A stretch of 64,000 nucleotides of DNA from Phyllobates terribilis. Lineage: Eukaryota. Location: NCBI RefSeq assembly GCF_046119375.1, contig NW_027362761.1:253022001-253086000 (forward strand), written 5' to 3'. The translations under genes were made by a program, and so were the position numbers. The notes beneath the pieces were generated by a model that made no database searches, was not told the DNA's origin, and saw nothing but the letters and a program-made list of their open reading frames with translations. The first letter of the stretch is position 1, and every line of letters begins with the position of its first letter. Of the stretch, positions 2,192 to 57,438 are shown piece after piece.

Positions 2192-2363
2192 CTTGCGTAG
2201 AGAACGGCAAGCAACTACATAATTAAGGAATTCTACACTAAGGCGACGGCAAAGTTGAATGGTCTGAACATGACACTTTCCAGTACGCCGGAAGGTAGAA
2301 AAAAGAAAGCACATGGATAGAGCGTCATCCAGGTCACGGAGAGCATCAATAAAAGTTGGGTAT
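2192..2363 (-). CDS. PES1: PES1 exon 5
   Basis: [57 protein letters not shown]; CAG|...|GTGAGT. Confidence 0.96.
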
Positions 2364-5300
2364 CTGCAAATATAGTAAAGATATTGTGCTCAGTTGCATA
2401 CGGCATAGGACTCAAGAAACAACGGCTGTAATGTGAGCTAAAGGAGGCTTACACACACAATAAAAGCAAACATATTGTGCGATAATAAAAGTATACAGCA
2501 CACTATTCTCTCAAAAGATAAAATAATAATTTTTAAAGTTGAAAACAAGGACAATTGAGACCACAACTACAAAACTAGAAAATTGTTTCAATGCCCCTTT
2601 CCCCACAAATGAAGATGAATAAGCAAATAATGAATATATAAAACTTGCAGACAAAAGTCAGAAAACATAGTTTTAAAAGTCAGCTGGGAAGTGTGTCTCC
2701 GCTTTTCCCTGCCCCGATCCCTTTGTCTGACAGATTCTCCCCCTATGTACATACTGTACATAGAAAGAGACCTGCCAGTCCTCTGTAAAGGGATGAGAGA
2801 AGCCAGACGGTGACCGGTCTCGAACCATTCAGCTGAAACACATTTTCACCCCGGCTGGCTTTTCAAACTACGTTTGCATATCTGGCTGCAATTACGCAGC
2901 GAGTGTCCGATTTATGCTTCCCATGGTTCAGGCAGCATGAATGTGATGCAAGGTCCCCTTTAAAACCTTTTTCATCTGGAAAATTACAGTGCTTTACAGT
3001 AGCAGAAGTGTGTACAAGACTTCAAATATTTTTACAGTGTAAACTGACAAATGCTGTAGATTTTATATCATTGTTTGGAATGCCAATCCACTCCAATAAA
3101 CCTCCAATGCACGGAGGAGGAAGGGAGACTCGGGACATTCCAGTAATTATAGGGGTCCCAGCCATTACCCCCTTGCAGAGAGATGACGAATGCCTTTTGC
3201 TTGAAAACTATCTTATATCAGGCACTAAAATCTGTAAACGATCATACCTCTCCTTGATGATGTGGTCGAGTTTGTATGTAGGTTTGTTATCTCTAATTCG
3301 GTCTACAGAATCCCATTCCTTTTTCCCATAGGCTTTACGCAGACGACGCACGAATACCTGAAAATAAAAGGAGCAATTTTACATTTCCAAAGGGGGTTTT
3401 CCAAATTTTTATAAAGTGGTCCCCAAAGACGGCAATTAGGTAAAATAAAAAAAAAAAATAAATCAGATATCACTCACTCTCCCCAGGTCCAGCACTGGGT
3501 CTCTGCCGCTGCTCCTACCCCTTTGTTTTGGCTGCAGTACTGCTTATATAATACTGCTTATATTAAAAGGAGGGAGCCGCTGATCTCAGCGATTGGCAGC
3601 AGTGGTGATATGCACTGTTGTCATGACATCACCATGCAGCCAAAACAAAGACAAAAGCAGTGGCAGAGAGCTGGGAGTGAATCCGGTAAGGGTAAACACT
3701 ATATAATTTTGTTATTTTATATTACTGCAATTTTTGTAGAGCACTTTTTAAAAGCGGAAAACCCTTCTAAGATAAGGAATGGTAACTGGTTAATGCTGTC
3801 TACTAGTGTCAACGAGACCGTAAGCTCAAAGGGGTTGACTCCGACAACATGCCATTTTAGAGAGAGACACCGCATTCAGTATCCTCTCCACAAGCCAAAA
3901 TGGAAAGTTATTCTGCAGGAGCAGCTCCTTCTCTGTCCATGTCATACATGGGTGGCTCAAGTACAACAGTCTTTTGTGTAGCTGGCCACCATGTAATACC
4001 ACATTTTACCAGCAGAGGCATATGAAAGAGAAACATAGGACTAGTAGCAGTGTCCATCCACAAAGTGAACTCTGCCATTTCAGGAGTTTCTCAGTGGGAA
4101 GGAAGAAAAATCTGCCCACATGATCATTTCTTTATTATATATATCTGAACGAGTGAGAATATTAAATCACCCTTGGGCTCCTCTAACATCTGGTAGTAAA
4201 CTATAGAGGCCATGATTTGTACCAGATCCCTGTATTTAGTCTGTGCCAAAGACTGCACTAAACAAGAGGATGGCGCTTTCCAAATGAAGACATGGCGCCT
4301 ATCGGCCAATAACAATATCCTTCTAAGTAAATGCTAAGACTGTTTCCAGCACATGTGTAAAAATGATAATAAATTGGCCAGGATATTACAAAACGTACCT
4401 TGTATTCTCTGAACTTCCTCACAATAGGTTCATGCAGTAGAAACTTAATGTCCTTCACCAGATAGAAGGTCCGGGGTGCTGTAGACCCCTTGTTGACTTT
4501 CTTCTTGTGTTTGGGTTCATGAGGATAGATTCCTTTTAAGATGCAGAGACGTCTAAATGAAGAAGCATGAGAATATCTCACTGATTTATAGATGTCAAAA
4601 ACTATTTAATTTAAAATAAAATAAAAAAATGCACAAAAAAACAGTGCCGTGAAAGTGTCCTCACACCAGAAACCACACACTGGGGTTGGATGCTTACTTA
4701 CATTTCTCACACAAATTATAGGCTACATAGAGTTTAGCACTACTTAAAGGCTACATACATTTTTATATATTTTTTGTTTTCTGATCTTTAGTTTGCTTAC
4801 TTGAGGAACTAACATTTCCTGCCACACACCAAAATTTCAAATGATTGTGGAAGGAAATTGGATTGTGAGTCCTATTTGTGAAAGGGTCTAAAGTAGTGGA
4901 AAACACTATAAAAGGGCCATACTATTATTTTCACTAAATGTTCCCCGTTCCCATTCCAATCTGATCTGTTACAGTGATCATGAGTATTGCTGCTGAGCTG
5001 CCACTGTCCTGAAGTCACATCTACAGGTTCCTTGTGCAAGATTGCTGGGTGATGTACAGGATGCGACGGCCAAAGGAAAAGACATGTGTCAGTTTATGAT
5101 GAAGCTTAAACCACTGACACCAACCACCATTGCAATGCCAGAATGTGAATTGCCGGAGCGTGGAGGTGATGCACTTTTTTAACAACCATAAATAAAAATG
5201 TTATGATTTTTTTGTTCTTAACTTGGTATAAGTAAAATATAATCTAGACGATTGCTCGGGGCATCAATGCCACACTTTGCCTCCACTAGTTTCTATATGT

Positions 5301-56900: not shown

Positions 56901-57438
56901 TCTGTTGATGCAGCGTCTCAGCTTATATGAGGCTGATTGACAGCCGGCTCCCCACTTTCTAACTGCGGGGAGCAGGCTGACAAACAGCATAGCGTCTGCA
57001 GAGACACCCAGTCGATAGCGCTGACTGGAAGAAAAGGTGCTGCTCTGTTGACGAGAGGTGAAACTGAAGCACGTGGATTACCAGCTGATTCGGGAGAGAT
57101 CGTCCCCGTGCTGAACAGACCATTGGTTAGCAACTATCTGCTTGTTAGTTCTTCGCTTCATACACAAAAATATACTAAAAATCCTGGATGACCCCTTTTA
57201 ATTAGCGGTTTCCGACTGTTCAACTGCTTGCCTAACAGGAAGGTACTCTCATCAGCTGTCTAATGAGTGAGGAATTGTTTTAATCTTATTTTTTCTCTAT
57301 TGTAGGTGGGTAAAGAGAGATAGTTACCTTCCTGTCGGAAGCCATAACCTAAAGGCAGCTGCAAAGGCTAAATTGGGCTATGACCCAGTAGAGCTGGATC
57401 CAGAGGAGATGTGTCGTATGGCCACCGAAGAACCACAG
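44848..57438 (+). CDS. POLE: DNA polymerase epsilon catalytic subunit A, partial (exons 1-13; rest right of the window)
   Basis: join(44848-44912, 47323-47458, 47740-47820, 48180-48224, 48299-48391, 49458-49612, 50407-50548, 53212-53292, 53376-53483, 53818-53928, 56375-56460, 56532-56651, 57306-57438). Exo[19 protein letters not shown], Exo[27 protein letters not shown]. All GT-AG with continuous frame; exon 14 not found before the window end. Confidence 0.98.
45026..45793. repeat. 60-bp minisatellite, about 13 copies, POLE intron 1
   Basis: Unit CAGTGAGCTATAGGAGAGGGGGCACCAGCCTGGTATAACGCTGCCCATGATCAGGATACA, in register with the 60-base display lines. Confidence 0.98.
46036..46363. mobile_element. 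PIF/Harbinger-type MITE
   Basis: TTA|GGCTGTGTGCCCACGATGC ... GCATCGTGGGCACTAAGCC|TTA; same family as 13929. Confidence 0.8.
46364..47170 (-). mobile_element. Degenerate Tc1-like element (5' part)
   Basis: ORF 46435-46836 [22 protein letters not shown]...RNGRPRKLS; boundaries approximate. Confidence 0.7.
47323..47458 (+). CDS. POLE: POLE exon 2
   Basis: [45 protein letters not shown]|GTAAGT. Confidence 0.96.
47740..47820 (+). CDS. POLE: POLE exon 3
   Basis: [27 protein letters not shown]. Confidence 0.96.
48180..48224 (+). CDS. POLE: POLE exon 4
   Basis: [15 protein letters not shown]. Confidence 0.95.
48299..48391 (+). CDS. POLE: POLE exon 5
   Basis: [31 protein letters not shown]. Confidence 0.96.
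49458..49612 (+). CDS. POLE: POLE exon 6
   Basis: [51 protein letters not shown]. Confidence 0.96.
50407..50548 (+). CDS. POLE: POLE exon 7
   Basis: [47 protein letters not shown]. Confidence 0.96.
51161..53056 (-). mobile_element. Tc1-like DD38E element, disrupted copy (POLE intron 7)
   Basis: CAGTACAGACCAAAAGTTTGGACAC termini inside (TACA)n tracts; ORFs 52088-52648 and 51761-52009 (QQDNDPKHT..38 aa..NPIEMVW); internal deletion and MITE insertion. Confidence 0.93.
51419..51718. mobile_element. 300-bp palindromic hAT MITE nested in the Tc1 arm
   Basis: 8-bp TSD GTAGTCAC (51411-51418, 51719-51726); TAGTGTTGAGCGAG ... CTCGCTCAACCCTA; uninterrupted target visible in the 59124 copy. Confidence 0.92.
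53212..53292 (+). CDS. POLE: POLE exon 8
   Basis: [27 protein letters not shown]. Confidence 0.96.
53376..53483 (+). CDS. POLE: POLE exon 9 (ExoI motif)
   Basis: [36 protein letters not shown]. Confidence 0.97.
53818..53928 (+). CDS. POLE: POLE exon 10
   Basis: [37 protein letters not shown]. Confidence 0.97.
54503..55252. repeat. Fold-back element with ~235-bp imperfect inverted arms (POLE intron 10)
   Basis: AAATATGTAGC..TTAGATTGTCAACCATTCA..TGACATTAGAACGCTGATCATTC mirrored by GAATGATCAGCGTTCTAATGTCA..TGAATGGTTGACAATCTAA..GCTACATATTT. Confidence 0.8.
56185..56308. repeat. 62-bp tandem duplication
   Basis: TGAGTGCTTTTAAAGTATTTTTTTTCTATTTTTTTTTTCTGTCACTATATAGAACAGTTATG present twice. Confidence 0.9.
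56375..56460 (+). CDS. POLE: POLE exon 11 (ExoII motif)
   Basis: [29 protein letters not shown]. Confidence 0.97.
56532..56651 (+). CDS. POLE: POLE exon 12
   Basis: [40 protein letters not shown]. Confidence 0.97.
57306..57438 (+). CDS. POLE: POLE exon 13
   Basis: [44 protein letters not shown]|GTAAAA. Confidence 0.97.

Follow-up and report, generated by a model that had tools for sequence, protein, structure and literature searches.

The window, a 64-kb stretch of Phyllobates terribilis DNA (contig NW_027362761.1, positions 253,022,001 to 253,086,000), contains the 5′ part of PES1 on the reverse strand, followed by TWNK on the forward strand, PXMP2 on the reverse strand, and the first exons of POLE on the forward strand (Table 1). 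The ATG of TWNK lies at 10799 and the A of the PES1 ATG at 10430, and the two start codons are therefore separated by exactly 368 bp, the figure given in an earlier note made from this sequence and now borne out by the exact ATG coordinates. The same note had TWNK converging on PXMP2 and PXMP2 head-to-head with POLE, and the exon map agrees, with 12.5 kb from stop to stop for the convergent genes and 647 bp from ATG to ATG for PXMP2 and POLE. Matching of PES1, POLE, and GTPBP6 used single-exon references. In three runs, RNA contigs stop at the splice donor of PES1 exon 1 (10407) and extend to 10521-10555 on the other side; the remaining PES1 exons lie past the left edge of the window. Contigs of the same type join TWNK exon 1 to exon 2 (12065 to 15366, GT..AG), and the cleanly aligned PXMP2 exons, 1 to 3, match Phyllobates terribilis PXMP2 at 100% identity. 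A LINE reverse-transcriptase remnant is present at 26470-28151, inside the spacer between TWNK and PXMP2. A conserved block of 100 nt at 5626-5727 was considered as a snoRNA and rejected, since the Rfam search was null and the block translates as PES1 exon 2.

Table 1. Genes, exons, spacers, and promoter blocks in the 64-kb window, in order of position.
Feature	Position	Strand	Comment
PES1 exon 5	~2186-2368	-	tblastx collinear with E. coqui PES1, 93% identity
PES1 exon 4	~3241-3360	-	tblastx against E. coqui PES1
PES1 exon 3	~4384-4563	-	Pfam Pescadillo_N, E 4.3e-25; 90% to Spea PES1
PES1 exon 2	5632-5712	-	coding; matches E. coqui and Spea PES1
46-bp tandem array	8019-10290		~50 copies; PES1 intron 1
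PES1 exon 1	10407-10555	-	CDS 10407-10430 (MGGLEKKK); 5′ leader reaches at least 10555
PES1 ATG-proximal upstream block	10431-10525	-	two E-boxes; today within the PES1 5′ leader
Spacer between outermost RNA-contig ends	10556-10655		at most ~100 bp between PES1 and TWNK
TWNK-proximal promoter and 5′ leader	10612-10798	+	ETS pair, GCGCCAA, GTCAT(A/G)..GGC block
TWNK exon 1	10799-12065	+	human Twinkle in PDB, E 2e-132
TWNK exon 2	15366-15625	+	homology; RNA contig joint
TWNK exon 3	~17495-17605	+	homology; collinear with E. coqui
TWNK exon 4	~21860-22009	+	homology; collinear with E. coqui
TWNK exon 5	23893-24135	+	TAA stop at 24133-24135
TWNK-PXMP2 convergent spacer	24136-36649		12.5 kb
PXMP2 (5 exons)	36650-44200	-	ATG at 44200
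PXMP2 exons	44084-44200, 39883-40002, 38146-38307, ~37775-37906, ~36650-36706	-	
PXMP2-POLE bidirectional spacer	44201-44847		647 bp
POLE exons 1 to ~13	44848-57441	+	ATG at 44848; gene runs on beyond
POLE exons 1 and 2	44848-44912, 47323-47464	+	

The same gene order is found in other hyloid frogs. PES1 and TWNK are head-to-head in Anomaloglossus (332 bp), Hyla sarda (352 bp), and Eleutherodactylus coqui (294 bp), the last with PXMP2 convergent downstream and collinear with the window over the entire block. TWNK and PXMP2 were located on equal-sized contigs in Hyla, E. coqui, Engystomops, and Bufo gargarizans, and their locus tags are adjacent in Engystomops (GDO81_001981/2). The tally for hyloids thus stands at the window and three species with PES1-TWNK, and two more with TWNK and PXMP2 on one chromosome. 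Misassembly, against which the earlier note had urged a check, would mean that TWNK was misjoined beside PES1 and PXMP2 in this assembly, and the genome is indeed large and repeat-rich, with a 2.3-kb tandem array 115 bp from PES1 exon 1. However, the order recurs in the independently assembled genomes of Anomaloglossus, H. sarda, and E. coqui, and by its adjacent locus tags in Engystomops, DNA contigs of a different sample tile 10300-10694, and spliced RNA was found for both genes, so that a misjoin has practically no probability.

Outside the hyloids, MRPL43 and TWNK are head-to-head in Xenopus laevis, Spea, and Mixophyes, and they occur together on one contig in salamanders, caecilians, lungfish, coelacanth, and a shark. 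TWNK and PXMP2 are on separate contigs in Mixophyes, Spea, Xenopus, Bombina, Hymenochirus, Pelodytes, Hyperolius, and axolotl. The order in Spea bombifrons is POLE(-), PXMP2(+), PES1(+), with the PXMP2-POLE arrangement conserved. The PES1 ATG follows the PXMP2 stop at 2.9 kb, and TWNK is missing there; this empty acceptor state is known from Spea alone. The cross-vertebrate comparison proposed in the earlier note therefore returned PES1-TWNK in the hyloids examined and MRPL43-TWNK in Xenopus, Spea, and Mixophyes, and TWNK is the outsider in the block, as had been supposed. Being syntenic within the lineage and not between lineages, TWNK behaves as a lineage-specific transposed (‘rebel’) gene.

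The linkage of MRPL43 and TWNK is also lost in ranoid frogs. Around TWNK of Lithobates and Nanorana, no neighbor was called within 10 kb, nor did exons of PES1, MRPL43, or PXMP2 come to light; MRPL43 of Lithobates has a new position, flanked by RPS25-like and CCDC84-like genes, and the ranoid and hyloid end states therefore differ. In E. coqui, MRPL43 faces a GTPBP6-like GTPase gene at 129 bp, and a search beside this MRPL43 for a remnant of TWNK found none. A simple excision that joined MRPL43 to GTPBP6 was considered but gained no support, as the 10 kb beyond TWNK in Xenopus, Spea, and Mixophyes yielded no GTPBP6 exons.

The four TWNK introns share their alignment columns with those of X. 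laevis TWNK at the MRPL43 locus, and RNA contigs show intron 1 spliced out; a retrocopy is thereby rejected, in line with the earlier observation that the gene keeps four introns. The Twinkle tree matches the species tree, as expected of an orthologue, with the hyloid sequences forming a clade (100/100) inside Neobatrachia on branches of ordinary length, and among the 120 matches listed each named hyloid species had a single Twinkle. Since the tree follows the species tree, the gene in the window is very probably a moved orthologue, rather than a retrocopy or a paralogue of old standing. The earlier note had left room for a retained ancestral or paralogous locus, under which PES1-TWNK would descend from a duplication that predates Hyloidea, kept in hyloids and reciprocally lost elsewhere. 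Such a history could draw on the loss of MRPL43-TWNK linkage in ranoids too, but ranoid TWNK adjoins neither PES1 nor PXMP2, and in Lithobates it is MRPL43 that has a new position. It could also draw on the weak placement of Mixophyes outside ranoids plus hyloids (88/86), but the hyloid clade is nested within Neobatrachia and the MRPL43-TWNK linkage extends to the shark. Together with the single Twinkle in each named hyloid species among those matches, these points make an old duplication very improbable, and we favor relocation of the orthologue.

PES1 and TWNK lie on opposite strands with under 1 kb between their 5′ ends, a head-to-head pair, and the spacer between them (GC 0.58, CpG observed/expected 0.65) is CpG-rich and TATA-less with ETS/GABP-type motifs. 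The RNA contigs reach 10656 on the TWNK side and 10555 on the PES1 side, ends that cannot fix the true transcription starts. An inverted ETS pair lies in the spacer (ACTTCCGC at 10612-10619 and CCGGAAGTG at 10646-10654). NRF-2/GABP sites belong to the general background on the mammalian TWNK promoter, a literature check having given no direct statement of them. The TWNK-proximal block aligns with the spacer that separates MRPL43 and TWNK in Mixophyes, Spea, and Xenopus (blastn against Mixophyes, E 5e-5), and its GTCAT(A/G)..GGC block reads GTGTCATGGCGGCGCCCT in Mixophyes and Xenopus. On the other side, 10431-10525 aligns with the sequence upstream of PES1 in Spea, where TWNK is absent (blastn 82.5% over 40 bp, E 1e-6). 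By these alignments, the ETS-containing core promoter travelled with TWNK, and PES1 retained its own ATG-proximal upstream block.

We conclude that TWNK was very probably transposed at the DNA level, own promoter included, into the spacer between PXMP2 and PES1 in the hyloid stem. In the hyloid (nobleobatrachian) ancestor, an intron-bearing TWNK would have been moved or copied at the DNA level with at least ~190 bp of its own upstream promoter, parting from MRPL43, its ancient head-to-head partner. The landing site would have been the short spacer between the PXMP2 3′ end and the PES1 5′ end, since these genes stand 2.9 kb apart without TWNK in Spea. As the PES1 block and the TWNK core each derive from an old locus, the present spacer would be a chimera, with old PES1 ATG-proximal sequence and E-boxes on the PES1 side and the old MRPL43-TWNK core and inverted ETS pair on the TWNK side. 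The ETS core carried by TWNK, which formerly also faced MRPL43, would today face PES1. We infer that the event postdates the split from Myobatrachidae and predates the hyloid radiation. On its right, the insertion ends somewhere within 24136-36649; when the sequences downstream of TWNK in donor-type and hyloid loci were compared, coding exons alone matched and no non-coding conservation was found. Because hyloid MRPL43 has been re-paired with a GTPBP6-like gene, the event may be more complex than one insertion. The earlier note had proposed a DNA-level relocation of TWNK beside PES1, and gene order, introns, promoter blocks, and the tree all bear this out.

We also considered whether the juxtaposition was adaptive, with one bidirectional promoter co-regulating PES1 and TWNK and so coupling ribosome biogenesis to mtDNA replication. 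The RNA-contig ends lie at most ~100 bp apart with the inverted ETS pair between them, but PES1 and TWNK each retain conserved upstream sequence of the old locus, and the neighboring pair PXMP2-POLE is reported to be independently regulated in mouse despite a common promoter (PMC2662417). Contigs of both mRNAs were found in the same three RNA-type runs, but levels are not comparable from contigs and contig presence carries no information on co-variation. The pairing is retained in every hyloid examined; its persistence, however, needs no selection, because gene order in frogs is as a rule very stable (Chen et al. 2024, bioRxiv 10.1101/2024.10.27.620512). We regard an adaptive origin as unlikely, and a link from ribosome biogenesis to the supply of mtDNA helicase would have physical proximity as its sole support. 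More doubtful still is an extended version, in which the ETS/GABP-type core brought by TWNK, once also driving MRPL43, came to lie ~100 bp from the PES1 start and became part of the upstream promoter of PES1, so that transcription of PES1 and TWNK would be coupled across hyloids and the coupling of MRPL43 and TWNK lost, with consequences for the copy number of mtDNA or for how the mitochondrial genome evolves.

The relocation that we favor is already known at the chromosome scale. According to Chen et al. 2024, archaeobatrachians carry twnk beside mrpl43 on chromosomal element H, twnk moved to element A in Hyloidea, and mrpl43 moved several times in Neobatrachia; their transposed ‘rebel’ BUSCO gene twnk represents the same event as that described here. 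The main text of that preprint is built on networks of BUSCO synteny and mentions neither an insertion site nor PES1, PXMP2, or promoter anatomy, and the fine-scale anatomy alone is new. It further describes the linkage as lost in neobatrachians, whereas here Mixophyes fleayi, in the assembly that the preprint also used, keeps MRPL43-TWNK head-to-head. The present analysis adds base-level anatomy and the survival of this linkage into Neobatrachia in Mixophyes. Against the unusual stability of gene order in frogs, the move of one intron-bearing gene to another chromosome is conspicuous, and it is rare that the donor-type (MRPL43-TWNK) and empty acceptor (PXMP2-PES1, Spea) states are both preserved in living relatives. 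The locus is a natural experiment, in which an ancient bidirectional promoter was split and one half fused to the promoter of another gene.

MRPL43-TWNK is a bidirectional pair in mouse and cattle (cited in Chen et al. 2024). PES1-TWNK resembles the vertebrate pair in its head-to-head orientation, short spacer, and the same ETS-containing core block beside TWNK, and differs in that the opposite partner is PES1. The PXMP2-POLE bidirectional pair was described by Otte et al. 2003 (cited in PMC2662417), and it is ancestral in form in the window, with 647 bp between the ATGs compared with 393 bp in mouse (PMC2662417). Its spacer contains four ATTGG motifs (reverse CCAAT), E2F-like GCGGGAA sites, and an inverted ETS+Sp1 repeat. 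PXMP2-POLE is not rearranged here and is a conserved anchor that marks TWNK as the newcomer.

The 46-bp tandem array in PES1 intron 1 was looked for in E. coqui and is absent there. In the window, most of its units carry a CACGTG E-box, and the array accounts for 44 of the 60 E-boxes.

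PES1, GTPBP6 and POLE were compared exon by exon with reference sequences. The start codons of PES1 and TWNK are separated by exactly 368 bp, reproducing the distance given in the earlier note. PXMP2 ends 12.5 kb downstream of TWNK, and the two genes are therefore convergent, while the PXMP2 and POLE start codons lie head-to-head 647 bp apart; both placements had been read correctly from the sequence. PES1 exons 2-5 match the Pescadillo_N domain (E 4e-25), with the remainder of the gene past the window's left edge. Homologue searches gave 88% identity between TWNK exon 1 and Anomaloglossus baeobatrachus Twinkle; for PXMP2 exons 1-3, identity is 100% to the Phyllobates terribilis gene and 82-96% to that of Dendrobates tinctorius, so the frog from which the DNA comes is P. 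terribilis or a very close relative.

Coding features of the PES1-TWNK-PXMP2-POLE block (window positions)
Feature	Position	Strand	Remark
PES1 exon 1	A of ATG at 10430	-	coding part just ATG + 8 codons
PES1 exon 2	~5632-5712	-	
PES1 exon 3	~4384-4563	-	
PES1 exon 4	~3241-3360	-	
PES1 exon 5	~2186-2368	-	
TWNK	10799 to TAA 24133-24135	+	5 exons
PXMP2	ATG 44200	-	5 exons
POLE	start 44848, traced to 57441	+	

The PES1-TWNK arrangement is confirmed as real. The entire block is collinear with the Eleutherodactylus coqui locus, and tiled DNA contigs from an independent sample connect PES1 exon 1 with the TWNK 5' leader (10300-10694). In contigs of three RNA-type runs, the first two TWNK exons are joined by splicing (12065 to 15366, GT..AG), and PES1 exon 1 stops at the splice donor at 10407. 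On this evidence, misassembly was set aside.

Gene order across frogs, a comparison suggested by the earlier note, was taken from gene calls around exact Twinkle proteins, and the species fall in two groups. The hyloids examined have PES1-TWNK head-to-head (Anomaloglossus, 332 bp; Hyla sarda, 352 bp; E. coqui, 294 bp), and in E. coqui the gene convergent downstream is an Mpv17/PMP22-family member named peroxisomal membrane protein 2. In Xenopus laevis (536 bp), Spea bombifrons (581 bp) and Mixophyes fleayi (421 bp), TWNK is head-to-head with a PF05047 gene, which is mL43 (MRPL43) by NCBI naming. Homologue search tables place TWNK and PXMP2 on one chromosome in Hyla, E. coqui, Engystomops (adjacent locus tags) and Bufo gargarizans, and on separate contigs in Mixophyes, Spea, both Xenopus species, Bombina, Hymenochirus, Pelodytes, Hyperolius and axolotl. 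MRPL43 is on the same contig as TWNK in archaeobatrachian frogs, salamanders, caecilians, lungfish, coelacanth and a shark.

The site before insertion is represented by Spea, in which POLE(-) and PXMP2(+) are followed, 2.9 kb past the PXMP2 stop, by a same-strand 581-aa gene. This gene is PES1 by tblastx, its exons 1, 2 and 3 matching window positions 10404-10502, 5626-5727 and 4384-4563. As PXMP2 and PES1 are adjacent there without TWNK, TWNK was inserted between them, in what had been a short spacer. PXMP2-POLE, the ancestral anchor, is a head-to-head pair in mouse too, with 393 bp between start codons against 647 bp here (PMC2662417).

The positions of the four TWNK introns coincide in the alignment with those of X. 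laevis, which rules out a retrocopy, as the earlier note had argued. That note had also allowed for a retained ancestral or paralogous locus. The Twinkle phylogeny it called for (maximum likelihood, 28 sequences, the window represented by exon 1 alone with no exons joined) recovers Anura, Neobatrachia (100/100) and, nested within it, a hyloid clade (100/100), all with ordinary branch lengths, and an old paralogue is accordingly rejected as very unlikely. The second twnk that might have lain beside mrpl43 was sought in E. coqui, and no remnant was found within 10 kb on each side of MRPL43. Relocation of TWNK is thus supported by the MRPL43-TWNK pair, the empty site in Spea, the intron columns and the tree.

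The PES1-TWNK spacer retains sequence of both origins. The ~95 bp proximal to the PES1 start codon (10431-10525), with two CACGTG boxes, align to the region upstream of Spea PES1, a TWNK-free site. The TWNK-proximal part (~10612-10798) aligns to the sequence between MRPL43 and TWNK in Mixophyes, Spea and Xenopus, with which it shares an inverted ETS pair (ACTTCCGC and CCGGAAGTG), GCGCCAA and a GTCAT(A/G)..GGC block (GTGTCATGGCGGCGCCCT in Mixophyes and Xenopus). This puts the junction between ~10525 and ~10612 and makes the spacer a fusion product of two loci. Mammalian TWNK is probably driven by ETS/GABP (NRF-2) sites. Judged from the alignments, the ETS core, once also facing MRPL43, would now face PES1. 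In RNA contigs, the transcribed sequence reaches at least 10555 on the PES1 side and at least 10656 on the TWNK side, leaving at most ~100 bp untranscribed, with contig ends not equivalent to true start sites. A hypothetical functional coupling of PES1 and TWNK is not favoured, because each gene retains its own conserved upstream sequence and because the neighbouring PXMP2-POLE pair is reportedly regulated independently in mouse (PMC2662417).

Within PES1 intron 1, a 46-bp tandem array of ~50 copies (8019-10290) begins 115 bp from exon 1 and accounts for 44 of the 60 CACGTG E-boxes in the window. The array is missing from the orthologous E. coqui intron and is therefore lineage-specific; it is curious because PES1 is a MYC target.

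At the E. coqui MRPL43 locus (L007 1-10000), MRPL43 is head-to-head, at 129 bp, with a 513-aa HflX-type, GTPBP6-like GTPase (GTP-bdg_N, GTP-bdg_M and MMR_HSR1 domains). Simple excision of TWNK fails to explain this new pairing, since the 10 kb that follow TWNK in Xenopus, Spea and Mixophyes showed no GTPBP6 exons. MRPL43 also has new neighbours in Lithobates pipiens, where an RPS25-like and a CCDC84-like gene flank it and TWNK is on another chromosome, and PES1, MRPL43 and PXMP2 were not found near ranoid TWNK loci. The MRPL43-TWNK pair was most likely broken independently in ranoids and hyloids, because Mixophyes keeps it, the two end states differ, and Myobatrachidae is nearer to Hyloidea than Ranoidea is in the accepted frog phylogeny.

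The move of TWNK is already known at macrosynteny scale, to which the detailed anatomy of the locus adds incrementally. Chen et al. 2024 (bioRxiv 10.1101/2024.10.27.620512) count both twnk and mrpl43 as 'rebel' BUSCO genes. In their account the two are neighbours on element H in archaeobatrachians, a transposition brought twnk to element A in Hyloidea, and mrpl43 was transposed several times in Neobatrachia; they speculate that the evolution of the mitochondrial genome may have been affected. Their main text names neither PES1, PXMP2, the insertion site nor promoter structure; it describes the linkage as lost in neobatrachians, yet the Mixophyes assembly they used keeps MRPL43-TWNK. Among the papers searched, no further one joins twnk with Hyloidea.

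The TWNK-PXMP2 spacer holds an AT-rich non-coding block of ~200 bp (33088-33290; ~27370-27525 in E. coqui locus L004) that is ~80-90% conserved between the window and E. coqui and contains homeobox-like TAAT motifs. It has no Rfam match, and no counterpart was found in the PXMP2-PES1 spacer of Spea or in the sequence past Mixophyes TWNK; it may be an enhancer. The spacer also contains a LINE reverse-transcriptase remnant of three adjoining ORFs (26470-28151) and a weak mir-103/107-like match (34900-34972, minus strand), probably due to chance at 26 bits versus a gathering score of 59.6 (E 0.007). In POLE intron 1, a 60-bp tandem array (45026-45793; 12.8 copies, 96% identity) yields a spurious, repetitive 273-aa minus-strand ORF. 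To the right of the last traced POLE exon, and probably inside a POLE intron, lies an unbroken 350-aa Tc1/Sleeping-Beauty-type transposase ORF (59287-60339; HTH_Tnp_Tc3_2 and DDE_3 domains), whose family, with decayed relatives at 52088-52648, 61681-62118 and 63122-63967, may have been recently active.
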